This document shows, one piece after another, positions 1-60,816 of a stretch of DNA of 64,000 nucleotides. Made by a program: the position numbers and the translations under genes. The stretch spans positions 1 to 64,000 of the forward strand of contig CDROCS010000192.1 in assembly GCA_977020255.1 (NCBI GenBank). The letters are read 5' to 3'. The stretch comes from Obrimoposthia wandeli (Eukaryota). Below the pieces are notes generated by a model. That model saw nothing but the letters and a program-made list of their open reading frames with translations, was not told the origin of the DNA and did not search any database. Position 1 is the stretch's first letter. Each line of letters begins with the position of its first letter.

Positions 1-1335
1 TTGATACCGTCTAGGTGATATGAAGCTCTAACCTCTCAATTGCGTACTGGTTTTTGTATAAAAAACATTAATAAAAATTAAAATATATTTAAAAAAATTA
101 TCTCAATAACAAGATTATCCTGCTTTCCTATTGATCAGTGGTTGCCTTCTCAAGCACTTGCTCCTACACCACCGCCTTTGCTTCCCCCTTGGTGGTTTGT
201 AGTAGCCTCTTCAGCCACTCCTCAATTATCAACGCTGGTTCTTGTATAAAAAACATTCGTTAAAATTTTCAAATCTTTTTTAAACAATTACCTCAATAAC
301 ATGCAGATTTTGCTTGTTTTATCTGCTTGACCTTCGGTTCAAGTTGGGTTTCTTCAATGAAGTAACCGACGGTGCGATATCCAGTTGAAGTTACTGAAGA
401 ACATAATTAAATAAATAATCTAACCTCATTCCAATTTGTTCCATAGGAGATTGTAGCCTTTTTTGAATATTTCAGCACTGTATCGTCTGCAGTTTTAGTC
501 AGAGTAGAAGCATCGAGTTATTTCTGGCCATATAATTTTCTATTGGTTGTGAGACTCGGGGTGAAATTAACCCACTCGTGGATGAATGGAGTCAAGTCCT
601 TGTTTCGATCCTACGGTACCTTATAACTGAAGAGCTCTTCGTTAGAGTCAAGTGCGAGGACTGTCTCTGGTCGAGACAACCAGATCATCTTCCAGATTGC
701 AGCCTTGAAATTGTCGAAGAGATTGCTCCTCGTTGATCTCTTACTACTTCCGTCAAAGCTGATGGATGAGCAGCTTTTGCAGTCCACTGGGGAGTACAAT
801 CTTCCCAATTTTCTCAATTGAATTTTTGGGATTAGTCAGATCGATATATTGGGATCTCTGTACCCCTTCTTTTGCTGCCATTGGTTCTTCTCTCGTAGCT
901 CTTGACTTGGTGCTTCACCTTGCCTCTGCTTTTCTTATCCTTTATCTACCACCGACGAGAGTTTTGACTAAGTAAAATCAATATACTGCTACGTTGTGAC
1001 GTTTGTTTACTGTACTGGAGAGAAATTCCCATACAACTCCACCTCTTTGTCCAAACCTACTTTGTTGAAAAAGGCTTTCGGTTGATTTCTGATTTACGAA
1101 AAATAATGAAAAGAGGCTTGCTTATATACACAAACATCAGACTAACTCTTTCATCGTCCAAATAGACACAGCCCAAATAATTTATTTGGATATCTGTAGT
1201 ATTTGACTACGTTTTTTTGCAACCATGTATCTATATTGCTCATCGACCCACCGCAGGCCCATCACGAAATTTCACCCCACACACATGCACGGTTTTAAAG
1301 AACAGTTGTACACCCCCGGGACATATCCACCTACT
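1..1335. mobile_element. Right end of a degenerate Polinton/Maverick (element A)
   Basis: Ends in ...acatatccacctact (1335), the reverse complement of the AGTAGGTGG terminus at 40229 and 51928. It carries the shared subterminal motif gaaatttcac.ccacacacatgcacggttttaaag (~1266-1300). Confidence 0.8.
102..1000 (-). pseudogene. Degenerate multi-exon Polinton terminal accessory gene, unknown function
   Basis: Minus-strand peptides QRSQYIDL and RSNLFDNFKAAIWK...RPETVLALDSNEELF match QRSKYIDL and RTNIFNN...QPETVFALDSDKDLF at 28.7-29.0 kb. Candidate GT-AG introns at 241-291 (51 nt) and 394-424 (31 nt). Stops and frameshifts are present; boundaries approximate. Confidence 0.5.
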
Positions 1336-1619
1336 TGTGTAACCTGTCTGTCATAATTCAACTATATCATGTCCTGAAGACAAGAGCAAATCGCAAATTA
1401 TTTTTGCATTAAGCTATTGACGCATTTTACAAAATTTTGAACACAAGCTATTTGCAGTTAGCGTATAATTTTCAAGGCCGTCATTGAGTTGAAATGGATT
1501 TAACGGTTAAAATGAAAGTTTATGAAACAAAAAATTCATTTGTTAATAATTCCACAATACCTTAAGCAACTTTGCATGTTCCAATATGATTCTTTCTAAA
1601 TATTGAATTCTTAGAAATC

Positions 1620-1920
1620 TCAGGTTTTTGAATTGAACGTTTCGGATATTTCAATTTTTTGGTAGAAAATGGTCTTTTTTCTAATAGGATTTTTGGAGCA
1701 ATTTATAAGAAATAGTTAGTTTTAATTTTTTTAAAACTATCTATTTTTTATAAATTGACCTAAAAATCCTAAAGAAATAAGACAATTTTGTTCCAAAATA
1801 AAAAATTTGGAATACTAACTATTTCTTATAAATTTACCAAAAAAACATGTGAAAAACACAATTTTCTACAACAAAACTGGAAAGTACGAAACGTCCTACT
1901 TTAAAAAAGGCCAGTCCGAA
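1620..1920. repeat. Degenerate palindromic (foldback/MITE-like) element
   Basis: aatttataagaaatagttagt (~1700-1720) is inverted at ~1812-1833 as actaactatttcttataaatt. Shorter nested inverted matches lie outside (gtagaaaat/attttctac, acgtttcg/cgaaacgt). Confidence 0.5.
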
Positions 1921-4807
1921 ACGGCCTATATTCCTGAAAATCATAACGTTGGTCTGATTACTTTATAATTTTAATAACTTAAATGAATAATTTTATAAGA
2001 TTTAAAGTAATTGAACACTGAACATTGTAATTATTTTATTAATTTTTTAATAAACACGTTATTTAAATAGAAATCTGGGAGGAAATTGCTACATGTATTT
2101 TCTGTTCAAATATGGTTTTACTCACATTTTGTTTATTTTGATTATTGAAACAACGGAAATTATTAGTTAATTTCGATTACTTTACTGACCTATTTATTTA
2201 TTTATTTATTATATCTCTTAGTGATATTAAACTAATGAATATTTGTAAGTAGATTATTAATACTATAAATAAAAAATAAAATGTTATAAATTAATATATT
2301 TTTGATATTATACAATCAATACTACTATGCAAAAATTTTAATTTTAAATACAAATCTGAAATATATTTTCTGCGAACACCACCTATTATGTACAAGTTTT
2401 CTCCTTATGAATAAACTCTAAATATACTTCGTTATCTTCGATTATTTATGCTTCTATCTGATTCACAATTTTTTATTATAATTGTGTTTGATAGGGAGAT
2501 CAATCCCATTTTAAGCTTGGAAATTAGCGGCTACAATTGGTTGATACGTTCCTCTGCCTGTGTTTGGATTCCAATTTCCGCACATGCACTCAATTCGTTT
2601 TCTTGTATTAGATTTCTTTTAGATGTCTGCTAATTTTCTGTGACTAATAAAGTCAAGAGCTTCGATGCAACTCCTGATTCTTCTGTGATTAAGTGATTAT
2701 TTTAATATATATTTTAATTTAATTAAACGTTCCTACACCCCAACATAAGTTCATACGAAGACTTCAAATATGCAGGTCTGTTTACCTAGTATAGAACAAC
2801 AGCTCTTTTATTGGATTGAATTATCTTTATATAATCATTAAGAAATTATTTTAATACTATTACAATAGTTTTATAGTATACATTATACATAGTATATCAT
2901 CATGACGTAAGGTATACTAAAATTTGAAACATTATTTAGAACACTTAGGTTTATCGTACATATACAATATTGGTATCAAACAACGTCTAAAAATACTTCT
3001 ATTTATGAGTGCAATATAAATTTTTATCATCAAAAATATATGTAAATTACATAAAGAATATTAGTAAATTTACAAACTGTGAATAAAACATTTTTGGCTG
3101 TAAAAAATCTTATTATAGTATAAACAAAAGAGTCAAGACAGTAAATGCATTATGTACATCACAATATCACAATAAAAAATTAATCACAAAAATGAATAAT
3201 GTCCATATGTTCTAGATTTACTTAAACCAACCCATTTACGGTTATCATCACCCGAACTTAATACAATATTATTTTTTGAAATTGTAAAAAGCTAGTTATT
3301 AATACTTATAAAATTTTCTTATGGTACCTTCAAGATATCATCAGTTTTAAAAGTATATAAATAAGTACACCCAATCAAATTAATTAGCTCAATTGTAAAG
3401 CTGAATACCAATGACTGGATGTAAAATGGCTACACAATGGCTACAATATGGCCAAAAGTTAGCTACAAGCTGGATATGCTGCTATGTATAGAATATTTTG
3501 GATTTATTTTATGAGTCAAATCAAAAGTCAAATCAAAAGCAAAAGTTAAAAAGTGAGTAATTTATTATTTGAATAGTAAACACATCTTTTATATAAATTT
3601 TTTCAACATCTTTCTTATATGTTTGTAGTAAGCTTGCATATCTTTGTAATCTTCTTAATTTATCCTCTTTAACAATCTTAGTCATATTATTTACTCAATC
3701 TTTAAGTAAAACATGTCTGGTCATTTTCTTTTTAAATATCTGTGAAGTTAGAAACTAACCATTTTCCACACAGGAAATTGGACATAGTCATTGGATTGAC
3801 TGAGCCTCTAGAAAGTTCACCAAGATTTATCTCATTCAATCATTCGCAAGTTTCATGCTGCCGCTGTGATTTTGCGCTTTGAACTGTCTCGCGGACCTCT
3901 TACAATCTTGTTTTTATAAATCTGAATACGAAAATCTCGCAATTTGTTTATTTTTTCTTCATTGTCGTGTAAATATTCCTCCCAATTCATTTAGGCGTCC
4001 ACTAGTATTGGTTTATCTCCTAAAGAGTACCTAAAATCATTGATCTAAGCTAAAAAATACCCTAAATCTAACATTTTTTTATTTTTTCACGAAATGTGAA
4101 TATTTAAACCATACCTTTTAATTCGTTTTCTGCCATATTTATTATTAAAAATTAAAAATATATTGCTTAAATTACCTTTTCCTGCCCATAAATTCGTTCT
4201 AAACGTCAAATAACACATAAAAACTGAGTTTAGGTTGTTTTCTTTTATAGTATTCACTTTTCGTTATGGTATTCATTTTGTTTAATTGTCTTATGTATTA
4301 AAATCACATACCAACATTTTTTCTACCCATGCAGATTAGTGTATGTATGCGTCCATATATTTATGGAATTGATTTTGCGCCAAGTTATTCATTTATGTTG
4401 AATGGTAAGTTTTTATTAGTGTGTGTTAATTGTTAATTTCATTTTACTACGGGTTATGGAATTCAACTTTATATATATGGAATTCAATTTTACTGAGTAT
4501 AGAATAAGAAATTACAGTATTCCATTTTCAAATTTTGACTCATTTATCTTTGAACTATAACATATACATTTTTTATATTATTTAAATTAACGATAACTTT
4601 TGATATTATTGTAATATTCTCCCACAGTTTTGCTTGAGTCCTTGTATTTAATATTATTGTACTCCAATGTATAAGTTGTATTCAAATATAAAGATTAGCA
4701 TGGATAAAACAATAAAACAATAATAAGTATAATTTGTGTAATATTTAAATTATATTTATATTTTTTGGATATTTAATTTATTAAATACTTAAATTTTGAG
4801 ATAATAT

Positions 4808-5336
4808 TCAGTGAAAAGTTTTAATCAAAAAAAAATAATATTTTCAATAGTCACATTATCTGAGTCACATCCATCCATAGGACCGGTCATTTTAAAAACA
4901 TCTGTAAAAATAATATAATATTTAATAATTGGATTAATTATAATATTTTTAAAGTGAAATTTACTGAATTATAAAATATAAATAACATATCAGACTAACC
5001 AAACTCTTTGTATAGGCTGCACAAGTTTGTTTTGTTTTTCAGGGAATGTATGACAGCCATTTGACAGTTAATGTCTCGTTTGCATTTTCTATAGCACTTT
5101 GCCGTTGAATTAATCCTGAACACATGTGTAGCATTCAACCCCTTCTTGGCTCGATAATTCGTCTTCACATTACACATTCCCGGTGGTTTTTTGACTAAAC
5201 TAGTGTCTATTTCACAATCACCATGCTCATTTTGACTTGGCCAATTACATGGTATATATTCTTGGTCAATTAAATATCCTAACAATCCACTGGCCATCGA
5301 AAGTACAATAAAGCTAATCAATAATTCCACCTTCAT
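4808..5336 (-). CDS. Secreted/surface PAN/Apple-domain protein (family A, copy 1)
   Basis: Hydrophobic signal peptide, then PCNWPS..E..DCE...KKPPGMC and PAN-type C..KC...NCQMAV....CSLY. Phase-1 GTTAGT donor at 4999 and acceptor at 4902 give a candidate exon 2 (4901-4808). Clear paralog of 20088-20412. Confidence 0.7.
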
Positions 5337-6202
5337 TTATTATACTTTAATTTCAAATTTCTAATTAGCTAAATCTCAATATTTTACATTTGCATATATG
5401 AATGCATATCAAACTGCATTCGTATTAACATCCTTTGGTACTTAAATTAAATGTAATCAACTAACCAAAATTTGTCAAACAATGGTAGATTTGTTTTGTT
5501 TATAATTTCAGTTTTACTGATATTATCTTGTATGTATAAACGTAACATATTTATACAGTTCAATTTCACATGATATTTATACATCATATTACACATAAAT
5601 TACGTAAATTAATTTAAATAACTACAATTTACCAATTAAATAAGTTATTATTAAGCGCTAAATTGTGTTCTGAATGATATAAGTTTTGAATTAAGACTCA
5701 TTATATTAAATATTACATTTTTCTTAAGCATTAAATCAGGGAACTAATTCTAAAATGTACCAAATGAAATGTGTTAGTAATGACTAGCAGCAAGTTTAAA
5801 ATAAAAAAAGTTACACTTTAAGAGAATAATCCCAAATGGGTAAATCTGAATATAAAAATAATCCATTTTAAATAAATATATATTTAATAGATATCCTTCT
5901 TATCATTCATAATTGCTAAATACCCGTAAACTCAGTAATTTTGAACTAAACTATCAAATTAATTTTGTTTAAATTCAATCAAAGTCAAACTATTAAATGA
6001 TTATTGTTTTGAAGTTATTATTTTTTACACTTAAATATACAGATTATATTAATAAATAAGTTATATTTTATTTTCAAAAAATGATCCATGTTTTGTAATA
6101 TTGTAGAATCTATTACTAAATGTATTATTAAAATATCTTCATAATAAGTCTATTAATTAATGAATGTTTGATTAATATTCTCAAGTACACACATCCAGGC
6201 CG

Positions 6203-6391
6203 TTAATACAGCCTAACCATGACAGCCGGCACTTTAGGCCGTTTCGTTCTGCATGACTCTTCAGACCCAGTGTTATATCCTTCTTCGCAATGGGTAAATT
6301 GCCTGCACAGTCGGAGATAACAAAAAAAACAATAAAAAAACACCGATGTAGCTGATAAAGTCGTTTCTACATACATACAACAAGCATACAC
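6203..6391 (-). other. Possible exon of a Cys-rich membrane protein
   Basis: Hydrophobic Cys-rich stretch VFFYCFFCYLRLC followed by a polar tail and a possible GTTAGG donor. No family recognised. Confidence 0.2.
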
Positions 6392-6419
6392 AAAATATCA
6401 CTTATTTTCGGGTCCAGTT

Positions 6420-7700
6420 TCAAATGGAGTGAACCAGTGGAGATGGATGTGCAGGCAACCCGATACGCGATCATCTTATCTCACCCAGAAACACCCAGGA
6501 AAGTATCCTGCAGTGCCAGATGGAGTTGACCCACTTCACGCAGCCCAATATGTCTCAGTGCGACCAGTTAAATCCTACCTCTGCAGCATTTCCCTCAATC
6601 ATCAAGAACATCAACCAACAGACCGAACTGATGTTACCACTGGCATTTACCCACAAACTCCATATCTTCTTCACTCTGTTCGACCAATCTTCTCCTCTAC
6701 TGCAACAACAACATGCAATTTGCTGCTGTGTCATCAAAATGTCTGTCTGTCTGTGTACTCGTGGGCAAAGTCACATGGGCCAGCATTATTTGGGGCTCCG
6801 GTCGACAGAAACGCACGTGTCAAACGGAATCGACCAGTGTCATTATCGCAGTACCGATGATGCTGTTTTGGTGCGGTGCTTTCTGACAATTGGTTGGCCA
6901 TCTAATGTACACGCATATCATCTCTCCTCTCTCATCTCTCTTCTCCCTGTATTGACAACAGAAGCAGGCAGTAGACCCAATCATCTGTGCTGCAATATCA
7001 TTGTGTCAATCTCCCCAGGTGTGACTTTCTTTCTTCTGGCATCATATCCCTCTACGCCAGTGATTCCCAATCTATGCGTCGCGACACACTAGTGTGTCGC
7101 CAAGCATATATAAGTGTGTCGCGAAAATTGTCTGTAATACGTCCCAGAATTGAACGTTTGTGTGCAGAAAAACAAGCACATATTTCGCATTAATTGATTT
7201 TTAAACGTACGTATTACATTTTGTTATTCAGAATGATTTTGTTATTTAATTTTAGGTTATTCGGACAGTGGTTGCATTTTTTTTTGGTGAGGAGGGAGAA
7301 AAAGAAACTCTTTTATGGAAACTGTAAAACTTTATCGATTTTGTTACAAATATTATTAAAGCGAATAATAAAGTGACGAATTATTTAATAATCCATTTTT
7401 TATTTATTTAGCATTTATATCCATTTGTAACTGGTTTAGTTTCTTAAAATTTTAAATTTGATGTGTCGCGACATTAAGCGAAAAAAAAAGTGTGTCGTTA
7501 TTAAAAAAAGATTGGGAAACACTGCTCTACGCTGTGTCAGTTCCTGCCGAAATAAATTAATGTGTGTTATTGGATCGGCCCAGGAGATTCCCCGATAGTG
7601 CAGCTTTTGTGATAACTCTATCCAGAAAGTAGTGTGTATGATCCAAAGGGTAATTTCTTCCTGTTTCCGGCCCTTTCCGGTTCCTTCAACACTTATAAAA
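6420..7700. other. GC-richer island of unresolved origin, interrupted by a hAT MITE
   Basis: Visibly more GC-rich than its flanks. The minus strand has weak echoes of a non-LTR AP-endonuclease (YREKRDERGEMICVYIR; VGFNWSH) but is full of stops. Confidence 0.25.
7058..7524. mobile_element. hAT-superfamily MITE (467 bp)
   Basis: TIRs CAGTGATTCCCAATCT and AGATTGGGAAACACTG (15/16 match), flanked by a perfect 8-bp TSD ctctacgc (7050-7057 and 7525-7532). Confidence 0.93.
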
Positions 7701-9329
7701 CTGCAGACTTACATCAGAGAAGCACATATTATTGTTTTTTATCCTAGCACAGTTACTTGAAAGGAGATATTATTATTTCAAATTTGGAAATTGTGAAACA
7801 ATCTGAGTTTGCACTCATTCATAATTTTCAGAGGCAATAAACAAACCCAGAAGACTAACAATTTGTGTTATGCTTTGTAAAAACAATATTTTATTATACT
7901 TGAAAAACCCAATTTTAGTTATTACAACGAATATGTTATTTTTGAGGGAAAAAACGCTAATTTTCCTTGACTTTTTGATATTTCAATTGCAATATTTTGA
8001 AGTTTAAATTAATTTTGTAACATTTATATAAACCAATATTATAACGTTCATTATAATTTCTTTTATATTCAAATTCTACATTGAATTTAATATATTTAAA
8101 ATCACAGTTTTAAAACACAAGTAAGAATATAATTTGTAACATTACAAACTTAAAACAAGACTTTTAATCATTTTATTATTTATTTTCTCTTTTAATAAAT
8201 GTATATAGCACAGATTCGTCATCAATTTAATATTATTAATAATTAAAATAAAATATTAATATTGAAGAACATTGTTTAGGGTTATTTTCTTATAAACAGA
8301 AAATGTCCTATAAAGGTTAAAAAAAGTTATGTTTCGTTAAAGTTGAAGAAAGCATTTGGAACAAAATCTTCTGAATCTTTTGAGTAGCTCGGTGAGGCAG
8401 ATAAATCAGTGTATTTTTTCTCAAACTGCGACATGTGAATGATCTAGTTCCTGGATAATGGAGGTTGAGTGAACCGAAAAATACAGGAACTTGAACTTGA
8501 AATTTTTTATTTATTATGACGTTGAGTTAGTAGTATAAAAGTAACTTTCATTAGATCTACTCGAGATAAATCATTTTTGTATTACGTACTCGGTAGAATG
8601 TGGTTTTCCGAAGTAAATTTGGCAAAAACGGTCTGATGTGCTAGAAACATATCATTTGAACACTCAAGTTCTCATAGCAACTGCGACCAAGTTACCTACC
8701 TTTTGGGGTTCTCGATCATTGCGAAGATATATTTTAATTTTCCTGTATGATTTTTTTAATTGACAGCTATAATTTTATTTTAATTATTTTCTTGAAGGTT
8801 CAGTTTTAAAAATATATTAAATTCTGATAGGTAATTAATACCACAAATAACAAAAAATGAAATGTTTTCCGCTGCGTAAAATTAAAAAAATTTACAATTT
8901 GAATTCAAAGAAATTTTTAGAAAACAAAAATATGAAATTTTAATATCGTTTTCCATTGCGTATTTAACTGTTATATCAATTTTTATTAAATCAATATTTC
9001 CTAACCTCTGAAAAATACTGTTTGGGAATTACATTAACTTATCACATGTATCTAAGGAATATTTTAATGTTTGAATTATTATATTAAACAAAATCACTTT
9101 ACTAAACAAGTAAAAAATTGAATTTAGATATATTCAAAGAAATATTCACTAAAAATCAGTCATACTCACACATTCACAATCAGTCAAACATTCCCTGCTC
9201 AATTTAACATTTACATTGCTGTTATCACCCGACATTTTCTTCGCACAGTAGAGCGTTGAAGTATTTGTTGCGTCTTGTAGTAGTATTTTCTTCACTGTCG
9301 TCTCCAGAGTTGCAGCAACTGGAATTCGG

Positions 9330-10100
9330 TTTCTTCGATCACCTTGAATTTCGTAGCATGACCTTCTTGAAATGACCTTTCTTTTACAATACGAACAGCT
9401 TATATTGTGACAATCTAGTCTCGTATATTCAAACTCTTTACAAGTCCAAAGTCGTTTCGTAAAATGCAGATTGTAATTTGAATTTTTGTGGAACGTTCTT
9501 CGATTTTCACATTATTTTCTTTCAATCAGATAGTGACCATTGTCTCTTTTTAGTACATGATTCTGGTGTAACTTATTTTTTACCGTGGACGACGCTGTTG
9601 ATGAGGAGCTTTTGCAAATCATTGATAATTTGATCTCCTTTCTGCATCATTTGGATAACTTCTTACTTTGATAGCAGTTATATCTTCAATTGACGTCAAA
9701 ACCTTTCTGATCGTATCCATCCTGTAAAACGTTTCTTTGATTTCTTTCAAATTCTGAACATTGATTAAATTGAATTCCTTCAATGCAACTGAACTCATTG
9801 AGTTATTTAGGTTGAATATCAGGATATTTTCTTTGCAGATATCATGATTTATAATTCTTCTTGTTCTCTATTCTTTTAGTAAGTATTGACATTTTCTGTA
9901 GTTCTTTTATAATTCATGACCTCCGATAAACACTGGTTCAATGTTTTCTTCTTATCATATTTCTTTGATAGAAACGTCTTGATAAATGTCGCTCGTAAAT
10001 TTTCCAGAGTTTAAGAAATTTTTAAAAAACATGAGATTTAATTTCGAAATTCTTCTATATCTTCACCAATTTTGTAAATCTTGGGAACTGAAATGAAAAA
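9330..10100 (-). pseudogene. LTR retrotransposon (Ty3/Gypsy-like) gag remnant
   Basis: Minus strand gives VPKIYKIGEDIEEF (compare FNIGEDIQKH at 30.3 kb) and a double zinc knuckle WTCKEFEYTRLDCHNISCSYCKRKGHFKKV. Many stops and frameshifts. Confidence 0.6.
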
Positions 10101-13100
10101 ACTACAGTTTCCTGGTGTGAGGGCCATGTTAAAAAAATCGGAGAACAGTATTGTGTAAAATAATGTCATTGATACATTTCATTTGTTAAAATCCAAAGAG
10201 TGGATCCTTATGAAATTAATAGAAAAATGTTTTGGTCTAAAATATCAATATTGGTTAAGTTTAGAGATATCTTAGATATCTTACAGACTCAAGAGAAGTA
10301 AACCAATTTTCACCTATGAAATACACATAAAGATTGAATTAGATACATTTAAAAATCCTTATCTGTGTGAGATATTCTGACGACTCTCGTTTCAATGCAT
10401 ATGTAGATAACTCCACGAAGAAGTTAATAAGATTTTGCACAGCAAATCCAGAAAAATTTGATAGAAAACGTTTCAGCTATGGATGGTCAAAGCTATGTTA
10501 CTTTCAGATACCCCACTGCGATAAATTTTACCCCATTTGGTGGATAATCGCAGGACAATTGACATCTTGGTATTGATAATACGATTTGTGTAGATATTAT
10601 AGTTGCATGCAAAGTCAAGTTTAAGAGTTCGATTGTTTATAAAAGTGTAAGAATTAGGTTCTAACAAATCACAATAATATGCTTTCTCTGCAACCAACAA
10701 TATTTTGATATAAATTTCTTCAAGTATAAGAAGATTTATTTTACGCTTTGCAACAATATTTTAAAATAATGTACAGTGACAAATCAATAAGATCGAAAAT
10801 TTATTTAATTTATTTTGTGAACAATATTTGTTGTGATGAGGTTTTAAAAGAAAATGGTAAGGATTAATAACACAGGTATGAAGAGGAGATAAAAACAGAT
10901 ATTTATATATAACAACATATAGGTAGAGAGTAGTGACAAAGGTAAGCTGAATTGGCTGCTGGCCGATGTTGTTATTGCTGCTGAAATTGTAGCAGCAGCA
11001 GTGATCTCCACATCAGCTAGAAACTGCCGAGATAAGAGATGTTGCAGCAGCAGGATAAGGAGTGACCGCTAGATGCTGTTAATGTTACGGATCGGAGGCA
11101 TGGAGATGACTGGGACAGTTCGCTCTGGATTTTCATGAGTGGTCCCCCATAGGGGCAATTTGTCTTTCCTCAAAACTTGTCTCGACCGGGGTTCGATTTG
11201 GCGAAGAATGGGCCATTATATTATAAGTACTTTACCATTATTAAATTATTATGAGTTACAGATCGTGTCAAAAATATTCAAATTTTGTCGCATATTAATT
11301 ATGCAGTTTCTAAAACAGTCATATATTTTCAATTTACCAAAACCTTCATTTTTCGGAGAGTTGACGGTTTTAGGAATCAACAACTGTTATCGGTACAAAT
11401 AAAAATGTTATTCTTATTTTAAAAACATTTAAAATTATTCTTGTATGGTTAATTAATTTAATTTTACATTTTGATAAAAGTCTTGCATATCTTTTACAAT
11501 AACAATAACAATCTATGATTTATTTCTCAAAAGCAATTTCTGTTTTTTTATGATTTTTCATAAGTCTTAAGCTGATTCTTGAATTTTTCAACATTATTAC
11601 AAATTCTTATATTCATCTCTAGATTGCTGTAAAGATTCAGAGCATAAAGTTCGAATATTCCCTCTGTCAGTTTGTTTCTGAGCATTTCTTAACTAATCTA
11701 CATTCATTATTGTTGCTCCTAAGCTGTATATACATTTTTTGACGAACGAATAAATATCAGTCATTGTGGCTGCGGTCAAGTCAAAGTTTCTCAATTGGAC
11801 AACATAAGTAAGTACAATTTGGTTGGGCTGCATCTGTTTTTGGTGGTCAAACATAGATCGGGTTCCTGCTACCTGTTTTTTTAGTAAGTATGGTGTTTTG
11901 ATTGTCGTCGTGGATACTTTCTGGTTTCAGTTGTAGGCTTATCCGCTATCGAAAGCGGTTAATCGTTGTTTGATTCATAGTAAAGTCGTCGCCGGTAGAA
12001 TCGTATAGGTTTCAATACGTAATGGAGCGCTTAATATGACACGGGTACCAACGTTGCTGGGTCACTGTAGGGTACATAACAGACTCAGTTATTTCTTATT
12101 TAGTCGTTCACCTTTCATCTCGAGGACTAAACCAACTATAAGCCATTAACGTCTTCCCTTAAACAGTGTCACAACTTTTGTCATCACTATTTTGAGAACG
12201 TTAACGTGTGAGCAAGCATCCATTATCTTGGCTGTCTGATGAATACACAAAGATTGCGTTGCCTAAAGCGTCAAAAGCTCTTCGAAATACATCAGAGTTG
12301 TTTTAATTTGTGGTACTACATCGGACTAATTATGTGCTGGTTGCATTGTCAGGTACAATCACCTCACAAATTCCGCCAACTGCAGTGATAATCTCTTCGG
12401 CACTCTCATAAGCCAACATTCGGATTGAAAATTAGCTCATTTTTTGTTGTGAAATCTGCATCCCACAATACATAAATTATCTTAAAATTAAATGAAACAT
12501 TCATAAAATCCAGAATTTTCGGTTAGATAGATAGACGCCAAACTGGACTACATTTGATTCCAATAAATAGTTGTTACTTATATAGAATGTGTTCATAGTT
12601 ATAACATTATTTTATTTCATAGAAGCACAAAAAATAGTTAGGTAGATAATCAATCCATTACAGAATAATTAATCGTTCTTAAGTTGTCTATTCGTATTTA
12701 TGTGTAAGCTGTAGGTGGTTAGGAAAACCCTAGTGTGGTCACTGTTTCGGTACGGAGGGACCATAAACTTCAAAAGATAAAACTTCAGAGATTCTTTATT
12801 GAAACATAAACCATAATTCATCTAAATCTTCATTGATTTAATTTAAACTTTAAAAATACAAACTTTAGTCACATAAATCCATAAAATCGATACTACAATT
12901 TTTATAATAACTTTGACCACCACTCTTTAAAACAACTGCTAAATTCATATTCCTTGAAACTTTTGTTGATCTCCTTCCCTACGCTCACTACCCACTCATC
13001 ATCTCCATCTCATTGCCCCCTTTTTAATTTATTTAATTAATAATATTTTACTGTATTCAATTTTATTCCGTTAATAATAATTAACTCTTCAACAGTCACT

Positions 13101-13753
13101 GTCTGTTGTCTTGTGTATTTTGTTTGACATAATTTATTACTGACGCCTCCAAATATTAAAATACCATGATGGGAGTAGAACATTGAGATAGTCATTAAAT
13201 TGCATTAAATTATGCACTAAATAGGAAAATAGCTGCCATCCTCATTTAGGAAGTTGAGAGCGCCGGATCTGCACTCTGGATCCATCCCTGGTATATATTA
13301 AAAAAATGTTAAGTGTTTGTTTCCATCTTGACATTAACATTTAAAAGTCGAACTTCATCGCATAACTTGAACATTTATTTGCATTCATTAAAATAACACT
13401 GATTTATCGATCCCAGCACTGAATTCCGAAATTTTCCAATGCAACCTGATACTCTGAACTGCCTACTCGAAATCAAAAATTGAAACTTGTCTAATTTGAA
13501 TAAAAAATATTTTTACTTGTGTTTATTTAAAATTCATTATTTATACCATATTGGTATTTATGTTTTCCGAAACTGAAACTGAGGAAGTACGGCAATACAT
13601 TTAAATAAAATGCACTTCCGCAGTTTTCTTTATTTAATTTTCTTTTTGAAATGCAATTTATATTGCAAAATTAAGTTAGAAGTCACAGTTGTAAAAATAT
13701 ATAATATTATTAAATAATCAAATTGGATAGAATCATCGTTTATATGAAAAGCA

Positions 13754-16065
13754 TCAGTCTAAAACGAGATAAGGCAGTCCAGTGAAATTGGTCCAGAACT
13801 TGCAATGTTGAACTGGACGATGCACGATCTTGCGTGGATCCATAATAACGAAATCATGTGATTGGGGCTTCGTTTGTAGTTTGGAGAGCTCTAAATGCTG
13901 TAGTCGTCTTCGGCAGAAGCAACGCCGGGCCTGTGAAAAAGTAGGAGTAAAATTGCTTAGTTTATTAATCTTGTTATAAATTAATATATTGATTGAGAAA
14001 TACACACTCCTAATAAGCTTGACTGAGTTGCATTATATGCGGTTAAAACCTTTTCTGTTCAGCAGTACCTGGAAGTTGGCTACAAGGGTGCATATGGTAC
14101 GTTGGAGCCAGCGGGAATCGGTATTAGGGAGGTGTGCAATGACAATGATGGAAGGCTGCAGAATGGAGAAGGAGGGACAGAACAGGACGAGAGAGGCCCA
14201 GCTGCAGGAAGAGCCGAGTGGCGCCAGTGATGGGAGGTGGATGGCTGGCTGGAGGGGTGTGGCTGTGGCCTGATGCTGTTGTAGGAGCAGACTGAGGGCA
14301 CATCGGCAGCTACGATGCTGGGACCGCTGAGATAAGGTGGGGGACAACCAGAAGCAGGATGCGTATTGGATGTGGAAGCGCTGGTGCAGCGGCATCCGCA
14401 GCTCTGGGAGCAAATAATACAGCGGCTCCTCTTCCGGTGACCCCGTATCTATTTGGTGCCTTCTGCTGGCGATGTTATGCACGTGGACGCTGCTTTCTGC
14501 ACAGTTAAAAGGAACTAATGTTAAGTCCACTCCCGATGGTTGATGTTCAGTTGGCAAATACAAATGTCGGCACTCACCTCCTCCACAGTGCTGCAAGTCT
14601 GTGAGAAGGCCCGCACAATGACGTGAGTGACTGGGGTAGAAGAAGCGCCGTACCACAGCGATAATGAGTGCCACGATGAGGACCACCATAAGGAAGTTTA
14701 CGAGGACAGTGATATGATGAAAGATGCTACAATGCAGTGGAGTTCTTCCTTGATAGTGCGGCCACAGACCGACCACGGTGTAGAGCGTGTTGTTGACGTC
14801 ACTAAGTGACCCTGCTAGCCTCACGCTGTAGTTTACTGCTATGTGGCCCATAGATACGCCTGTGCATGTGTAACTAGATTATGTAAATAACCATTATTGA
14901 ATGCTTGAGATTTATGTTATTATTCACATTGGTGATATTCGAGCGTTATTGAAGCAAATGTAAAGTTCATTGTTGCTAAATTTAGAACTCTTCTTATATA
15001 ACTAATTTTTGGGCCGAATTAGAAGTGTTATCGAATTAGTCGTACCGGTTTGGATGAGTCTTCTCCCGGCCATAACTGCATCCAAGTGTGGGCGGCTATT
15101 CGTGAAGTTGCCTACGAACACCACAAGCAAATGTGGATTCAGCGATTCATAAGCCGAGCTGCGCCACATTCGGAGCCAACCGAGGCCCTCAAATACATTC
15201 CCGTCGGGGCCAATCATGAAGTTGTAGGGGAAATCTGTGGAGACGTCATGAAAGTGGCGCTGTTGAGCATCCACCAACAAGTTGGCGCACGCCTCCCTGG
15301 TTCGACAGAAGCAGAGACGCTCCGTGAGATTGCCAATAAGCACCTCAGGCACAGGCAATTTGAGCGGTATTGTCTTACGTTTAGTGTTCTTTTTGTCACT
15401 AGCACCCCACTCTGTTCGATTTATTATTCGCTGTGTTTCCTTGAGAACTGAGGCACTGTAGAACTGGCACGTGTCGGAACCTGCTATGTGGACGAAGCTG
15501 GCGTTATGGGATCGAAAAACAAAGTTTTCGTAGCCAGTGTACACAAGATAGAACCACCATCTGCACAAGAATAGTTCTCTTCCAATAATACACTGTCAAA
15601 AATCTCGTCACATATATACAGGATAATTAAAAATAACTGTATTTCATGAGTTATTAGCAATTGAAGTTGTAAAAGTTATTTTGAATAACCTTGTATATTC
15701 AAAAAATAATTGATTTTATTTTGGAAATTTTAGAAGATTATTTTTTAAACATATCATAAACCAAATCCTTTCTCACATCTAAGCATGCTGAGTAAAGACA
15801 AAATATGTCTAAATATACATGTATAAGTAATACCGAGTGTTGCCCCATGTCTTTAGGATCCTGAAGCACTGGCCCACGGAACAGTGGATGCGCGCATTCT
15901 TGCACGTCTGGTTGTCCATGAACCGCTCCACGCCAGAGTATGCATTGCAGTCAAACCGCTTCACAAAAACATTAGTGCTCGTAAGACAGCCACACGGCCA
16001 CTCGCCCGACTGCTGCTTCTCGACACCGGCAAACCCACTCTGATCAGATACAACAATAAAACATT
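13754..16065 (-). CDS. Transmembrane peptidoglycan-recognition protein, non-catalytic (3' exons 16065-15834, 15560-15046, 14859-14578, 14496-14069, 13930-13754)
   Basis: PGRP motifs IINRTEWGA, PYNFMIGPDGNVFEGLGW, VFVGNF...P, and LIQTG|VSMGHIAVNY...LYTVVGLWPHY split by a phase-1 intron (14860-15045). A TM helix ITVLVNFLMVVLIVALIIAVV-RR follows. All junctions are GT-AG and phase-consistent. The Zn ligands (HHT, GHR, CPG) are absent. Confidence 0.8.
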
Positions 16066-16157
16066 CTAAAATTTGATTATCAATTAATAAAGTAGAAAAG
16101 GACTATCTATAAATTTTTGATAAAACTAAACAAAATAAATCAAATTAAGAAAACTGT

Positions 16158-17292
16158 TTAAATTCTGAAGTGTCCATAAGCCAGTCTAACGTTCTTTTCT
16201 ACCTAAATGCGCTTTTCGTCATTACTACTTAACACTATTTTTGTTGACTTATGGGAATACAGTTGATGGGCTCTTGAAATAAATCTAGTTTGCTCAACGC
16301 TTTTACAGCACCCAGTATCTTAAACTTTCCGGTAGGCCTCATGTGTAAGATTGTTTCTTCCCACACCCTTTGCTCTCATTGAACATGTATTATTATATGC
16401 ATGTAATCTGTAGCATTTAGGGCGTAGGAAATTAGGACGTAGAAAAAAATCACCTAACCTACGCTTTCACCCTTAAATTTCCCGATAATATCCTTTAAAC
16501 TCATAGACTGTAGAGGATGATTAACGGGATATTTATAAGTATAAAGTAAGTTATTCTTAAACATTGCCCATAATAATTGATTTTGAAAACTAACATTCCT
16601 ACATTCTAAAAAGAATTAGTCAGTGTCCCCAGCTGCGATTTTGATCTCACAATTGAATTTGTTGTGATATTTCTCTAAATCAATATATTGAAGCTCATAC
16701 ATTCTGAGTTTGGAAATGTCTACAATCGTTTGACCTATATAATTCGGTCGACTGAGACAAATACTCTATTTTCCTGATAATACTGCTACTAAGTCATCTG
16801 CAATTGTAAAACTACGCCTGAAGTTGCACTTGCTAGAATATGTTATTAGTTTACGCTCATCATTGCAAAACTATAGACAAATACGTTTCTGCAAGTCCTC
16901 TATAGTTTTACCTAAGATACTATTACTTTTAACTTGTAAAAATCCTGATCAATTTTGCTAGTGGCAAATTAAGTTTTCTCAAAATTTTCACAATATCATT
17001 TTTAAACACTACGTTTTGACTAAAGTTTATAGCCGATAAATTCAATTTAATTTCGCTCTCAACTCTAAGTAAAATTGAAGAAGTCGCCAATGCACCACAT
17101 AATTCAACTTGTCGTCATGAGTTTACAATAATTTCTTAACCTTTGAATTAGGTGAACATTGATAAACAGGCGCCACTAAACGATCGTCTAATTTATCGTG
17201 TACATTAGAAAGGATTTTTAAATCGACCTCAACTAAGTAGCCGACATTTGACGAAACTGTATCAACTGTAGCCAATTATATCATAAACTTAT
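16158..17292 (-). pseudogene. polB: Protein-primed family B DNA polymerase, C-terminal fragment
   Basis: Colinear nucleotide similarity to 61454-62590, e.g. tgggaatacagttgatgggctcttgaaataaatctagtttgctcaacgc is identical. Disrupted by indels. Confidence 0.92.
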
Positions 17293-17431
17293 TCTGCTGG
17301 TGCTTCTGTTCCTTCTTCTTGGTTCACCACCGTCGACATTATTGTAGAAGGGCATTCTATTAATTTTTGATTTATGAAAAATAATGAATATGTCTTTTTA
17401 TATACACAAACATCAGACTAACCCTCTTTCA

Positions 17432-17532
17432 TTGAGCGGTATTGTCTTACGTTTTCTGTTCTTTTTGTCACTAGCACCCCACTCTGTTCGATTTATTATT
17501 CGCTGTGTTTCCTTGAGAACTGAGGCACTGTA
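17432..17532. repeat. 101-bp copy of PGRP exon sequence 15360-15460
   Basis: 99/101 identical by direct comparison; begins with ttga and is followed by ttga. Confidence 0.95.
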
Positions 17533-17709
17533 TTGACCAATGAGAGCGTGTTATTCAAATAATTTGTTTGAAAATTCGTAGTATTTTCGTAAGTTTTTGA
17601 CTACGACCGTGTGTTTATATCATGGGGTAGAAAAATATTTTAAAATAATTTATGTAAAAAAAAAGTTGTATTTTGTTCATATTTTATTAACATGTGTGTA
17701 TTTAGAGCA

Positions 17710-17711
<2 letters not shown>

Positions 17712-17749
<38 letters not shown>
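17712..17749. repeat. (TA)n microsatellite
   Basis: Pure TA run. Confidence 0.95.
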
Positions 17750-17938
17750 CATTTGTGAATGTAGGCGATTTAAAGGGCAGGGGTACCCCATATGAGGGTA
17801 TGGTCAGATTAGACTGGACACATCCACTTACTAACACCATCCTAGTCTGTTAATGTGTAACTCAAGAAATCCAACTATAATTATTTAGAGAAAAGAAGTG
17901 ATAGGTTTGGTTTGTCTTTCTAATAAGGCAAATATTAC

Positions 17939-18172
17939 TTGAAAACGCTCTAAGTTCCAAAATTTTTGGTGAGACCATCTCATTCAGTTTCAATTTATCT
18001 GTAAAAATAATGTCAATATATTTAGGAATTGGTAAAGATTATCAAGTTTGTGATTACGTAAGCAAATTCACTATTTGCTAAATGCTAAATTTAATAATAT
18101 CTAACAGTATACCTCGAGGACATGGGTGCACAAAGTGCAGTCCTCAAAGAAGTATTTTGCATCCCGACTCAA
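17939..18172 (-). CDS. Two short candidate linker exons (18172-18106, 17998-17939) of the PAN-PGRP gene
   Basis: Open frames LSRDAKYFFEDCTLCTHVLEVY and KLKLNEMVSPKILELRAFS. AG acceptors at 18173 and 17999, GT donors at 18105 and 17938; phases 0-1 and 1-1. Confidence 0.45.
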
Positions 18173-18521
18173 CTATTTTTAAAATTCAAACTTAAAATGA
18201 TAATTTTTGACTCACGACTATTAGTAGATTGTTTGATTTCTTTAGTTCTAATTATAAAAGAAGACGTTTATTTAGTTGATTAGTTGTAATAACTACTATA
18301 AAATTATAATAAAATTCCCGTATGTTCTGGAAGACATTTTAAGGTTGGCCACAACACAATTTGTAGTGAATATATCCACTAGAAGCCATTGAAGATTAGC
18401 TACAACACAATTTGTAGTGATTATATCCACTGGAAGCCATCACATCAGTTCTATCAAAGTACATTGTAAGAGTTAAAGAAAGAAATTCTAATCTGAAACT
18501 CTGTAATGCAGTCAATGGTAC

Positions 18522-18834
18522 CTTTAATGCCAATTTTGAGATTCTCGGGGAGTGACAGCAGTGCCAGGTGACGCGTACGTAAGACATGTAGCGACTGTGG
18601 TTGACAAAATTATATCGTAGCGGCACTGAGCAAATCGTGGGACTCCGAGACATCAGCAGGCAGTGGGCGTAGTCGGTAGAGTAGAGCAGAGAGCGACACA
18701 TCGACATCCGCTCACAGTTGGCCAAGCAATCGCTGAAGTTGTGCGTGTGGTATTTCAGCAGTAGCTGCAAGTAGTCCGGGTCCATCTCTTTTCCGTCCAT
18801 TTTGAAGTTGCCCGAACAGTTCTTGTTTCTCTCT
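18522..18834 (-). CDS. PAN/Apple-domain exon (family C)
   Basis: DCLANCERMSMCRSLLYSTDYAHCLL fits the PAN C-x3-C-x5-C...C pattern. Acceptor cacag at 18835, donor GTACCA at 18521. Confidence 0.65.
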
Positions 18835-19274
18835 CTGTGTTCGTCAGAGATGCAAGAAAATATAATGATTCCATAATGAAAATTCACGACAAATTAATGA
18901 GTTACATTAATCCAAAATTTGAATATTTAAAATCAATAATTAAATATTTTCTAATTAAAGATCGTAATTTAACTATAGTTCTTTAACATAATTTAATTTT
19001 TTTATTGATTGTTTTACTGTTTATTATTGGTATTATGTTTTGAAGTAATAATTATAACAATAAAGCAATATATTTAATATATCGAAAATATCGAATAAAT
19101 CTATGACATTTGGTTATTTATTAAAATTATTAAGTAAAACAGGAAAACTAATATATGTATCTATGTAAATACATTATTGTTATTGTTGTTAAAATTTTAA
19201 TAAGATACAATTTAGTCAAATATTGAGATTACCATATTTTCATGCAGATAGTAATTTAATTAGTCTTTACTTAC

Positions 19275-19635
19275 ACACATGATGGGTCGATTGTATAGTT
19301 CTGTACTTTTGCACAAATCCAAAGGTAGGCAATTAAATATTTGGAATATCCCATAGTAAGAGTGGTGGAATTGAAATTTTTGACGAATTTGCAAATTTCA
19401 TGATTAGTGTCATAGTTGAAGGCCCCGCACACCGGCTCATTTTGACACCGTCTTTTGCAATCTGCCACGTAGCGAACTCTGGTGTCACCGTGGAAGTCCT
19501 GATAGTCATTACTGGTATACATACTGTACGGTGTGAACATCCACTGACCGTTACACCGACCCGAGACAGGTTTGCCCACGGTGAAGTTGCAGAATTCCCA
19601 CTTGAACACGTTACTGCGGAACAATGGAGCAACTC
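19275..19635 (-). CDS. PAN/Apple-domain exon (family B, copy 1)
   Basis: DCKRRCQNEPVCGAFNYDTNHEICKF. Acceptor ttccag at 19636 (phase 1), donor GTAAGT at 19274 (phase 2). Paralog at 35.9-36.2 kb. Confidence 0.7.
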
Positions 19636-20087
19636 CTGGAAGGGAATATTGATAAGTGATTTTCTGATAATTTTTAAATATGTTAAGCTAAGAGTCATAT
19701 ATATAAACTATCTTACTTACATGATGACAACATATAATGTAGGACTACTGTTATAGATAAGCATGGTCGATAATCAGCACTTTTATGTTATTTAAAATAT
19801 CAGCGTTCCTTATTGATTTTATTATGTTTTCATTTACCAGACGACACTTATTGATGGTTTGAAATAAATTAAATTTTAAGTTAATAATTTTTTGCATATT
19901 TTCTGATTTTGTCATGTATGAGTGATGAAATCTAAGTTATAGTACTAGTGCAATGACATCTTTGGTTGGTATTTGGAGAATATTGGCGAATTTTTGATTA
20001 GCTCTGTTTTGGTTTGGAGTAAGCATCGGTTACATCTACCCTCAGTTTGAGTGTGTTTTCGAAAGTAAATGTGGCCGTGTAACTCAC

Positions 20088-20412
20088 CGTATTCCTCGTA
20101 GAGACTGCAAACGTGCGTTTTCTGATTGATGACTGCCATTTGACATTTCAAGCTCTCCTTACATTTGTCATAGCACGGTTTGGTGTGGGAGTTATTAAAT
20201 GTTCTGAATGGTTTCAGTCCCAGCTTGGCCCCAAAATGAAAATTCACATCACAAAGTCCCGGCGGTTTCTTGATAGGTTTCTTGTCGTTTCGTTCGCAGT
20301 CGTTCTTCTCGTACACGGAAGGCCATTTACATGGAGGACTATTTAGATCGGCAACAATTGATCCTGGAATAAGGTAACACGTAACCAGGCAGATAAGAAA
20401 TTTATTCATCAT
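20088..20412 (-). CDS. Signal peptide + PAN/Apple-domain exon (family A, copy 2); unspliced ORF runs on to 19945
   Basis: MMNKFLICLVTCYLIPGSIVA, then PCKWPS...KKPPGLC...CYDKCKESLKCQMAV...CSLY. A GTGAGT donor at 20087 sits at the same codon and phase as the donor in copy 1. Confidence 0.72.
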
Positions 20413-54509: not shown

Positions 54510-55034
54510 ATGGAGCTAAATAATAATGCTGTATTTCAAATAGTTGGTCCCAGTGGAAGTGGAAAGACACATTTCGTATGTAAATTGTTGCAAAATGAAT
54601 CTCTTTTCAAATCAAGTTTCAAAAATATTTATTGGCATCATGGTGGAGGAGGGGAAAGCGGATTAACCAAAACAGAAGTTTGCAAGTTGAAGAGAATACA
54701 ATTTATTGAAGGGTTTGATGCAAATTGGTGTGAAAGATTGAAAAAAGAAGATGTAATAATAATTGATGATTTGTATCAGGAAACTAACAAGGAATCAGAC
54801 TTTAATAATTTATTTACAAAGATTGCAAGACATCGTGAAGTAACAGTTATATTTATCACTCAAAATCCTTTTCACCAAGGAGGTCACCATAGAACTAGAA
54901 ATTTTAATGTACATTACTTAGTTTTATTTAAAAATCCTAGAGATCAAACAGTTGTTGATTTCGTGGCCAGACAGGCATTTCCCCAAAATAAGAACTTTCT
55001 AGATAATTACAAGAAACGTGCAATAAAAAAGTAG
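54510..55034 (+). pseudogene. Packaging ATPase (A32/FtsK-like) copy 1, C-terminally truncated by the duplication junction
   Basis: Walker A GPSGSGKT, Walker B IIIDD, ITQN and LFKNPRD; diverges after QNKNFL at 55001. Confidence 0.88.
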
Positions 55035-55081
55035 GTTCAGACATATATAAAGAAGATTTTACAGAATACAATTTCAGTCTA

Positions 55082-55583
55082 ATGAAACTCGTAAATATAA
55101 ATTATAAAGGTAGAACAGAAGATGATGTTTCGTACTTACCATTCAATGAATGGAAGCCGAGACAATATGTAGAAAAGTTTGACAATTTCACAGTTGTTAT
55201 TTTTCCTACAGGTTAGTTTTTTTATTTTATTTTCATATTGAATTCTTTTAGGAAATTGTCGTGTTATGGGATGCAAAATACCAATGCTTGGGTTCAATTT
55301 ACCATTTGGAATTCAAATCACTGCAACACAATCAATCACAATTTCAGTTAATCTTGGGAAACAGATAAATCTTTTAAAAACTGCAGAGAAAATGAAAGAA
55401 GAATGCATGTTTGAACCAGACATTTTTCCTGCTCTCAGTTATTTGAAGTTTAAACCGCTATGTGTAAATATATTTTCCAGTGGTAAAGTTAGGATATTGG
55501 GATTGAAAAATTTTGATTATCCAGACATTGTTGATTTGATTTTAGAAAATATATCTTATTACATCTTGTTATCTTTTCTATAA
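55082..55583 (+). CDS. Minimal TATA-binding-protein-like protein, 153 aa (exons 55082-55211, 55252-55583)
   Basis: Two TBP-type repeats: TVVIFPTG|NCRVMGCK (TBP TALIFSSGKMVCTGAK) and FEPDIFPALSYLKFKPLCVNIFSSGKVRILGLK (TBP [34 protein letters not shown]). A 40-nt GT-AG intron contains an in-frame TAG. Confidence 0.88.
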
Positions 55584-55602
55584 ACAAACCCGTTTAAACT
55601 TA

Positions 55603-55869
55603 TTGTTTGAAATGAATAATACTATAAATAGAGACAATGAAGTGGAGCGTCTTGCCGACGAAATATTTTCTGGAAAAATTAGGGGTAAAGAAATTTTATC
55701 AGAATTAAAAAATAATGATATAACAAGAGATAACATTGAAATATTGGTTAGATCACACGTTATTCGAGAATTTAGAAATCGAACACAAATAAATAAAATT
55801 ATAGCCAAATATTCATTAATTAATTTTTGTATTTCATCTACAATAGATCTAACATGTACATTTCAATAA
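55603..55869 (+). CDS. Unknown ~85-aa Polinton protein
   Basis: Intact ORF between the TBP-like gene and the ATPase; no family recognised. Confidence 0.5.
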   Translation: MFEMNNTINRDNEVERLADEIFSGKIRGKEILSELKNNDITRDNIEILVRSHVIREFRNRTQINKIIAKYSLINFCISSTIDLTCTFQ

Positions 55870-55920
55870 GGAAACTTCTATGATAATATACACAATATTA
55901 AAAATGAAAGAGTATATGCA

Positions 55921-56556
55921 ATGGAGCTAAATAATAATGCTGTATTTCAAATAGTTGGTCCCAGTGGAAGTGGAAAGACACATTTTGTATGTAAATTGTT
56001 GCAAAATGAATCTCTTTTCAAATCTAGTTTCAAAAATATTTATTGGCATCATGGTGGAGGAGGTGAAAGCGGATTAACCAAAACAGAAGTTTGCAAGTTG
56101 AAGGGAATACAATTTATTGAAGGATTTGATGCAAATTGGTGTGAAAGATTGAAAAAAGAAGATGTAATAATAATTGATGATTTGTATCAGGAACCTAACA
56201 AGGAATCAGACTTTAATAATTTATTTACGAAGATTGCAAGACATCGTGAAGTAACAGTTATATTTATCACTCAAAATCTTTTTCACCATAAAACTAGAAA
56301 TCTTAATGTGCATTACTTAGTTTTATTTAAAAATCCTAGAGATCAAACAGTTGTTGATTTCGTGGCCAGACAGGCATTTCCCCAAAATAAGAACTTTTTA
56401 GTTGATTCATTCCACGATGCTGCTAAACAAGCACATGGGTATATATTTATTGACTTTACACAAGCTTGTCCAGATGATTTATGTGTTTTAACCGACATAT
56501 TTAATTCTAAGGGAGTAACTGTTTATAAACAAATAGAGAACAATCATAAAAGATAA
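55921..56556 (+). CDS. Packaging ATPase (A32/FtsK-like) copy 2, full length with a 4-aa deletion
   Basis: Walker A and B and the C-terminal GYIFIDFTQ are present. 12 nt are lost between cacca repeats (FHQGGHHRTRN becomes FHHKTRN). Confidence 0.92.
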   Translation: MELNNNAVFQIVGPSGSGKTHFVCKLLQNESLFKSSFKNIYWHHGGGGESGLTKTEVCKLKGIQFIEGFDANWCERLKKEDVIIIDDLYQEPNKESDFNNLFTKIARHREVTVIFITQNLFHHKTRNLNVHYLVLFKNPRDQTVVDFVARQAFPQNKNFLVDSFHDAAKQAHGYIFIDFTQACPDDLCVLTDIFNSKGVTVYKQIENNHKR

Positions 56557-56685
56557 ATTTATAATGCCTTTTAAGAAGTTGATAGTAAAACGTAAAGCAA
56601 AGCCTAAGAAATCAAAAAAAGAATCATAAAGAAAAAAGAAGTGAAAAAATTAATCAAATGTGTAGTTAGAAATAAAAAAACTTAA

Positions 56686-57057
56686 ATGGCTTCGAATATA
56701 AACAATATTTAAATTGAACCTTTTTTATTAAAGAAAATACAAAGAAGCATACCCTATTTTAAAGCTTTGGTCAAAGCCTCTTCTCATAAGAGAATGATTA
56801 TTCTTAAAGCATTTCCATCTTTTGTTGTAAATGATTTATTGGAAGTTTTGTATAATATAGTTTTGGGTCGAGTAAAAGTTGGAAATCGGAAAAATATATT
56901 AAAGAAATATAGAAAAACTCTTCTAGATATTGCTAATGTAAAAAGTAAAAAAAGGAAACGAAATATTATTCTTAAACATAATGGTGGTTTCATAGGGGCT
57001 GTTATTCCAGTCGTTGCTTCAATTATCAGTAGTATTATAGCTGCGACACGTTCATAA
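56686..57057 (+). CDS. Basic Polinton virion-type protein with C-terminal GGF-hydrophobic helix
   Basis: K/R-rich body ending KHNGGFIGAVIPVVASIISSII, typical of the small gene next to Polinton integrase. An in-frame TAA at ~56710 follows the upstream ATG. Confidence 0.6.
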
Positions 57058-57085
57058 ACAATTATTTATAAAATCAGTTAAAGAT

Positions 57086-60815: not shown

Positions 60816-60816
60816 A

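Follow-up and report, generated by a model that had tools for sequence, protein, structure and literature searches.

A planarian-type long PGRP gene of Obrimoposthia wandeli: eight exons, PAN modules, a non-catalytic PGRP domain and a Cys/His-rich tail

The membrane-bound PGRPs of Drosophila are type II proteins, in which a RHIM-like domain lies at the cytoplasmic N-terminus and the PGRP domain at the C-terminus, and many proven PGRP sensors (PGRP-LC, -SA, -LE) are devoid of catalytic residues. In Schmidtea mediterranea seven PGRPs were described, four of which are long (~800 amino acids, aa; PGRP-L1 to L4); the family scheme (Fig. 1B of that paper) contains signal peptides, PAN, PGRP and transmembrane (TM) regions, only the short secreted PGRP-S1 to S3 retain the catalytic residues, RNA interference (RNAi) of the family impaired the clearance of S. 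aureus, the effect being strongest for the secreted PGRP-S3, and the intracellular pathway is, according to the authors, not known (Kumar et al. 2026, PMC13453010). Earlier, pgrp-4 was found to be induced by Pseudomonas, and pgrp-1, -2 and -3 were placed, along with TAK1/MKK/p38 components, among the 'activators' of an RNAi screen of infection pathology (Arnold et al. 2016, PMC4993586). The present text concerns a gene of the minus strand, positions 13,754 to 20,412, in a stretch of 64,000 nucleotides (nt) from Obrimoposthia wandeli (assembly GCA_977020255.1, contig CDROCS010000192.1, positions 1 to 64,000; the whole stretch is called the window). Its 868-aa product probably belongs to the flatworm (planarian-type) long-PGRP family as a membrane protein of type I and is, as inferred here, a surface sensor or binding receptor.

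Comparison with the planarian long PGRPs: the S. mediterranea long PGRPs (PGRP-L1-L4 of Kumar et al. 2026; pgrp-1 to -4 of Arnold et al. 2016) and the window protein have in common, within ~800-870 aa, a signal peptide, PAN, a single non-catalytic PGRP, a TM segment and a tail, as well as the TGYENF linker motif and the tail order C...CxC...C...H...CxC. The following features of the PGRP-L family were found in the window protein: secretion signal (by hydropathy), N-terminal PAN, single non-catalytic PGRP, TM, length of ~800 aa, and a full-length homolog that bears a name. This homolog came from the search of a representative protein library with the PGRP exon (697 matches), where only two of the 150 best matches, P0113 (852 aa) and P0117 (801 aa), aligned from the start of that exon; both contain PAN and Amidase_2 domains with a TM segment after the PGRP, and both are collinear with the whole window model, the TGYENF motif and the tail included. 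Both primers used for the quantitative PCR of pgrp-4 (Arnold et al. 2016, PMC4993586) translate to residues of P0117 (285-291 and 309-315), which is therefore S. mediterranea pgrp-4; the pgrp-1 primers of the same work gave no match among the proteins compared. A second protein built in this way is P0113, present in UniParc only, for which no encoding contigs are on record. Three homolog searches yielded no further PAN+PGRP protein: the P0113+P0117 profile returned only P0113; the single-ORF paralog L001 (see below) returned nothing; P0117 returned nothing beyond matches to the PGRP domain, from insects and other sources, at ≤25% coverage. A tree of 79 PGRP domains placed the four PAN-PGRP-TM proteins on long branches, that of the window domain being 2.06 changes per column; the tree in which the four were held together gained 46.6 log-likelihood units over the free quick tree (p of the approximately unbiased test, p-AU, 0.967), and monophyly of these PGRP domains is favoured. 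Two differences from the planarian proteins were noted: in the window subfamily ~25 additional aa are inserted behind the membrane segment, and the PGRP groove is more degenerate than that of Smed pgrp-4. The initial annotation, made from the DNA letters, had proposed a receptor of an architecture that it did not recognise; since the layout is already published for planarian long PGRPs, the gene is a member of that family and not a new kind of receptor. The planarian architecture is thereby extended to a second, distant genome, in which one branch has expanded into a cluster.

Gene model and transcript evidence: four sequencing runs (X1-X4), all from a single sample, cover the stretch. Runs X1-X3 are genomic-DNA-like, with introns covered; X4 (50 M letters) is transcriptome-like, for 0.30 of the sampled words were present in it, a fraction close to that of exons in the stretch, its depth was zero in most intron bins (low depth was found only over the intron repeat), and its contigs skipped the introns exactly, with 0-1 differences from the window. 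The GC content at 14-16 kb is 46%, that of exonic DNA being ~46%, vs ~30% for the whole window. The ten minus-strand intervals proposed at the outset were joined again and gave 2760 nt with one terminal stop and GT..AG at all internal boundaries, as had been stated; the predicted length of ~919 aa was not borne out, the splicing in X4 giving eight exons and 868 aa. X4 records: 27 – from 20426 across the junction 20088|19635 (exon 1|exon 2) to 19634; 26 – whole exon 3, with 18522 spliced straight to 16039; 25 – 15834 joined to 15560 (exon 4|exon 5); 24 – begins at the exon edge 15045/6 and has 88 further unlisted letters before it, so that 15046|14859 is supported only in part; 23 – ends at 14578 with 8 loose letters identical to 14489-14496, which gives the junction 14578|14496; a reciprocal loose end at 14498 corresponds to 14580-14588, an exact match to the neighbouring exon.

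Record 26 and the zero X4 depth across 17850-18449 indicate that the two short exons of the initial annotation (18172-18106 and 17998-17939), along with the GTTAGA donor at 18105 on which they had depended, and the acceptor at 16065 are unused; the acceptor actually used is the CAG before 16039. In this way 67 + 60 + 26 = 153 nt are dropped from the ten-exon model, i.e., 51 codons, the frame is kept, and the coding sequence amounts to 2607 nt. The joined exon 3|exon 4 70-mer (18522|16039) had no match in the 1.35-Gb assembly, where only its halves matched separately; the joined form is hence RNA and not a retrocopy. The gene is real, consists of eight exons, and is spliced and expressed from the minus strand.

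It is very improbable that the model has made one gene out of two adjoining ones, one for a secreted PAN protein and the other for a PGRP-TM protein. None of the listed contigs reaches from exon 1 to exon 8, and the ends of X4 records 25 and 26 within exon 4 are 13 nt from each other; but in record 26 PAN exon 3 is spliced to the linker exon, the next contig runs from the linker exon into the PGRP exon, and the same order is met in the single open reading frame (ORF) L001, in P0113 and in P0117. The PAN and PGRP parts are one gene, as had been proposed, because they are held together by an X4 contig, by a collinear intact paralog ~50 kb away and by an intronless paralog of 887 aa (L001); the PAN-PGRP fusion is a real transcript of the corrected model.

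Paralogs: the close subfamily comprises at least 8 copies, some of them broken, on three contigs, namely the window contig C192 (the window gene and a second gene), C2706 and C1710; more distant members of the family were found in the same genome on C1385, C1432 and C132. The intronless paralog (C103:648-651 kb; L001:1408-4071, minus strand) has the full PAN-PGRP-TM-tail architecture in its single ORF. The second gene of the window contig (C192:70000-88000; L025, L032; plus strand) is an intact, stop-free paralog in which all eight exons follow one another in the same sequence; it is in divergent orientation to the window gene, and Polinton DNA lies in between. The two genes are 42-59% identical at the aa level in the PAN exons, and 77-83% in those that encode the linker, TM and tail. 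The ratio of nonsynonymous to synonymous changes (dN/dS) between them was 0.19-0.42 in every exon with measurable dS, the main tail exon included, with 0.19 for exon 7; dS was saturated in exons 1, 2 and 8. The low ratio validates the reading frame and argues that it is under constraint.

Values of dS ranged between exons from 0.23 to saturation, and identity with the C2706 copy falls from 99% in the PGRP exon to 78-87% in the adjoining exons, which points to exchange of segments between copies. Damaged copies were located at ~49-64 kb and 132-146 kb of C1710 and at ~369-386 kb of C2706 (L030, L031, L036). The two C1710 copies, 97-100% identical, lack 54 codons at the beginning of the PGRP exon and contain stops or frameshifts; in the C2706 copy the last exon is interrupted by a stop; the exon-3 ends of the C1710 and C2706 copies lie 10-14 kb upstream. 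The 176-nt deletion at the beginning of the PGRP exon has the same form in DNA contigs of X1-X3 as in the C1710 copies, and the C1710 and C2706 copies are either alleles on haplotigs or paralogs. Judged by these comparisons, the window gene belongs to a locally expanded cluster with intact, mosaic, broken and segment-exchanging members.

Such surroundings allow the window copy to be seen as a young duplicate in a decaying cluster, dispensable or turning into a pseudogene, and the near-identical damaged C1710 copies, the stop in C2706 and the duplication of a piece of exon 5 in an intron are in line with this. Against it stand the intact frame of 868 codons with canonical splice sites, the X4 contigs, correctly spliced and nearly free of differences, and dN/dS below 0.45 throughout; decay of the window gene is accordingly considered improbable. 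As a separate observation, the DNA contigs of X1-X3 show 13 differences from exon 1 (20088-20412), along with a 6-nt gap (20275-20282) that leaves the frame intact; they point to a highly polymorphic locus or to a close paralog that collapses onto exon 1.

Domains and topology: Pfam, structure and database searches were run per exon or on L001 rather than on the spliced window protein. The layout of the 868-aa protein is a signal-peptide-like N-terminus, three PAN exons with one module each, a Cys-rich linker peculiar to the family, PGRP, TM, RR and a tail of 225 aa. Pfam (PAN_1 cut-off 21.4 bits): exon 1 – PAN_3 E 0.0027 and PAN_1 E 0.025, both below threshold; exon 2 – PAN_1 E 1.3e-5, 25.4 bits; exon 3 – PAN_1 E 2.7e-5, 24.3 bits. 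Exon 4 has 77-88% aa identity in the paralogs, and the PGRP domain begins at ~15451, within exon 5. Kyte-Doolittle hydropathy gave an N-terminal hydrophobic segment at aa 2-24 (peak 2.02), followed by ...IVA|DL, and a single dominant hydrophobic segment with its core at aa 623-643 (~14713-14651; peak 3.31), followed by RR. Sites of the NxS/T type number 14 in the ectodomain vs 1 in the tail, and Cys residues 35 before the TM vs 11 after it. The signal-like N-terminus, the position of the TM after the PGRP and the skew of NxS/T sites together support a type-I orientation. The order of modules in the initial annotation, from signal peptide through three PAN modules, Cys-rich segment, PGRP, TM and RR to the tail, is in agreement with Pfam, the custom profile described below and hydropathy, and its type-I topology, opposite to that of Drosophila PGRP-LC, is upheld.

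Non-catalytic PGRP domain: Pfam Amidase_2 (PF01510) gave only E 0.13 with the PGRP exon alone; L001, P0113 and P0117 passed the cut-off of that family. With phmmer against PDB, the PGRP exon matched 26 distinct PGRP sequences, the best being 4z8i_A (PGRP3, E 2.8e-17). A custom PGRP profile of 194 positions, made from 62 short PGRPs, found a single domain in the spliced protein (aa 439-613; profile positions 15-187/194; 119 bits); the alignment crosses the exon 5|6 join and supports it independently. The zinc ligands are lost: Asn/Gly stands in place of His1 and Gly/Ala in place of His2, and the position of the Cys is missing (profile 'ithTat' – IGNLTE; 'llGHRq' – RLAGSL; the Cys-bearing segment is deleted). 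The histidine of 'GAH', retained in P0117 (Smed pgrp-4), is absent, and of the amidase active site (His, His, Cys, Tyr) only the Tyr of YNF remains. With the zinc ligands and the GAH histidine lost, the protein cannot be an amidase, and its PGRP domain is, by these residues, non-catalytic, as had been predicted.

Comparison with other PGRP systems: Drosophila PGRP-LC, -LF and -LA likewise have a non-catalytic PGRP ectodomain in a single-pass protein and are presumed surface sensors or regulators; the phmmer matches to chains of Drosophila membrane PGRPs (2f2l_X, 2xz4_A) had E ~1e-9. Unlike them, the window protein would be type I, bears PAN modules, and has a tail without a RHIM-like or other recognised signalling motif. 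Amphioxus PGRP3 (PDB 4z8i, 4zxm), the best match of solved structure, also has an extra N-terminal binding module before the PGRP; it differs in that it is secreted, keeps the His of the HH motif, and has no PAN, TM or tail. Two proteins of the tardigrade Paramacrobiotus metropolitanus, P0043 and P0116, share a non-type-II layout in which the PGRP precedes an intracellular signalling part; this part is a protein kinase domain instead of the Cys/His tail, and PAN modules are absent. Both are uncharacterised candidates for PGRP receptor kinases.

Cytoplasmic tail: a comparison of six proteins, drawn from two genomes, showed six Cys and one His to be invariant; their order is juxtamembrane C, CxC, C, H, CxC. 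Exon 7 is collinear with the tails of L001, L038, P0113 and P0117; in exon 8 the CxC is aligned with that of the homologs, and the aa identity in paralog copies is 51-100%. No Pfam family was matched by the tail (window exons, L001), the search of ESM Atlas with the tail gave no usable match and no cluster, and no core of the IQxG type (RHIM-like) was seen in it. Prediction with AlphaFold2 gave a mean pLDDT (predicted local distance difference test) of 41.3 for the tail of L001, from an alignment of 4 sequences, and of 42.0 for its linker + PGRP region, both too low for a fold search. The acidic-YxxL stretch EEEPLYYLL was considered as a hemITAM-like signal and dropped, the Tyr not being retained in the closest intact paralog. 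The tail contains a second hydrophobic stretch (aa 768-790), which exceeds the threshold (score 2.03) in the window protein alone and aligns with probable core strands of the homologs. The conserved Cys/His tail might bind metal or be palmitoylated. More tentatively, the ~220-aa tail may be a previously undescribed signalling module of flatworm PAN-PGRP proteins that would link bacterial sensing to TAK1/MKK/p38, while the expanded, segment-exchanging cluster would diversify the PAN end; this proposal is possible, although doubtful at present. What the published work leaves open are type-I receptors with a membrane-proximal non-catalytic PGRP and a conserved Cys/His tail that matches no known domain; for workers on flatworm immunity the tail is the obvious place to seek the downstream pathway.

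Function: the reading preferred here is that the protein serves as a surface sensor or binding receptor on epithelia that come into contact with microbes. Bacterial wall material or glycans would be captured by the PGRP groove, the PAN modules or both, and the Cys/His-rich tail would relay a signal or direct uptake. A number of points weigh against this reading or parts of it. The sensor role is proposed by analogy with the published work on S. mediterranea PGRPs, and the identity of the window protein to P0113/P0117 is only ~30%. The window PGRP is more derived than that of Smed pgrp-4, the loss of the GAH histidine included, so that binding of peptidoglycan is not assured. The calls of the signal peptide and the TM were made by Kyte-Doolittle hydropathy only, and the tail stretch at aa 768-790 could in principle be membrane-embedded. 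The kind of run X4 is not on record, its transcript nature being read from its behaviour, and the junctions 19275|18834 (exon 2|3) and 14069|13930 (exon 7|8) are in no listed X4 contig; these two are based on zero X4 depth in the intron (observed for the exon 2|3 intron), on the words of the last exon (16/16 sampled words present in X4) and on conservation in paralogs and homologs.

With the same gene and architecture, the protein could also act without sensing peptidoglycan: the degenerate PGRP would then be a scaffold or decoy as in Drosophila PGRP-LF or PGRP-LA, or the PAN modules would be the real binding part, in adhesion, scavenging, phagocytosis or dampening of signals. The absence of every zinc ligand and of the histidine of GAH, the long branch of the PGRP domain, the PAN exons as the part most diverged between paralogs, and a tail with no known signalling domain (Pfam, Atlas) can be cited in its favour. 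However, PGRP-LC, -SA and -LE are proven sensors that are also without catalytic residues, the PGRP domain of the window protein is conserved end to end and under purifying selection (dN/dS 0.26), and conservation of the tail between species speaks for a function inside the cell. A role without sensing is therefore regarded as the less probable of the two, though by some way the most serious of the alternatives, and that of a surface sensor or binding receptor is retained as probable.

Table 1. Coordinates of the exons of the PAN-PGRP-TM gene and of associated features in the window.
Feature	Position	Strand	Remarks
Exon 1	20088..20412	-	start codon at 20412; signal-peptide-like N-terminus (aa 2-24) and PAN-like module 1; X4 record 27
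Exon 2	19275..19635	-	PAN/apple module 2; PAN_1 match; junction with exon 1 in X4 record 27
Exon 3	18522..18834	-	PAN/apple module 3; PAN_1 match; whole in X4 record 26
Exon 4	15834..16039	-	exon 6 of the initial annotation minus 26 nt at the 5' end; first part of the Cys-rich linker
Exon 5 (initially exon 7)	15046..15560	-	rest of the linker with TGYENF and N-terminal two thirds of PGRP; X4 records 24, 25
Exon 6 (initially exon 8)	14578..14859	-	C-terminal third of PGRP (to ~14741), TM, RR, start of the tail
Exon 7 (initially exon 9)	14069..14496	-	cytoplasmic region: first CxC motif and conserved His
Exon 8 (initially exon 10)	13754..13930	-	cytoplasmic C-terminus: second CxC, stop codon
Excluded short exons (18172-18106 and 17998-17939)	17939..18172	-	X4 depth 0; skipped by record 26
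Intronic 101-nt duplicate of exon 5 piece 15360-15460	17432..17532	-	98% identical; inside a high-copy repeat

Repeats and other elements: the intronic repeat at 16050-17650 reached a word depth of 1e4 to 1e6 in X1-X3 and is a very abundant element of the genome. Other copies of the high-copy repeat that holds the 101-nt duplicate are without this piece, and contigs of X1-X3 jump from 17425-17434 to 17531-17541; the duplicate looks like templated filler or captured DNA. Polinton/Maverick genes were found with Pfam at 54510-63475 of the window: two ORFs of A32-like packaging ATPases, an rve integrase with chromodomain, and a protein-primed DNA polymerase B.

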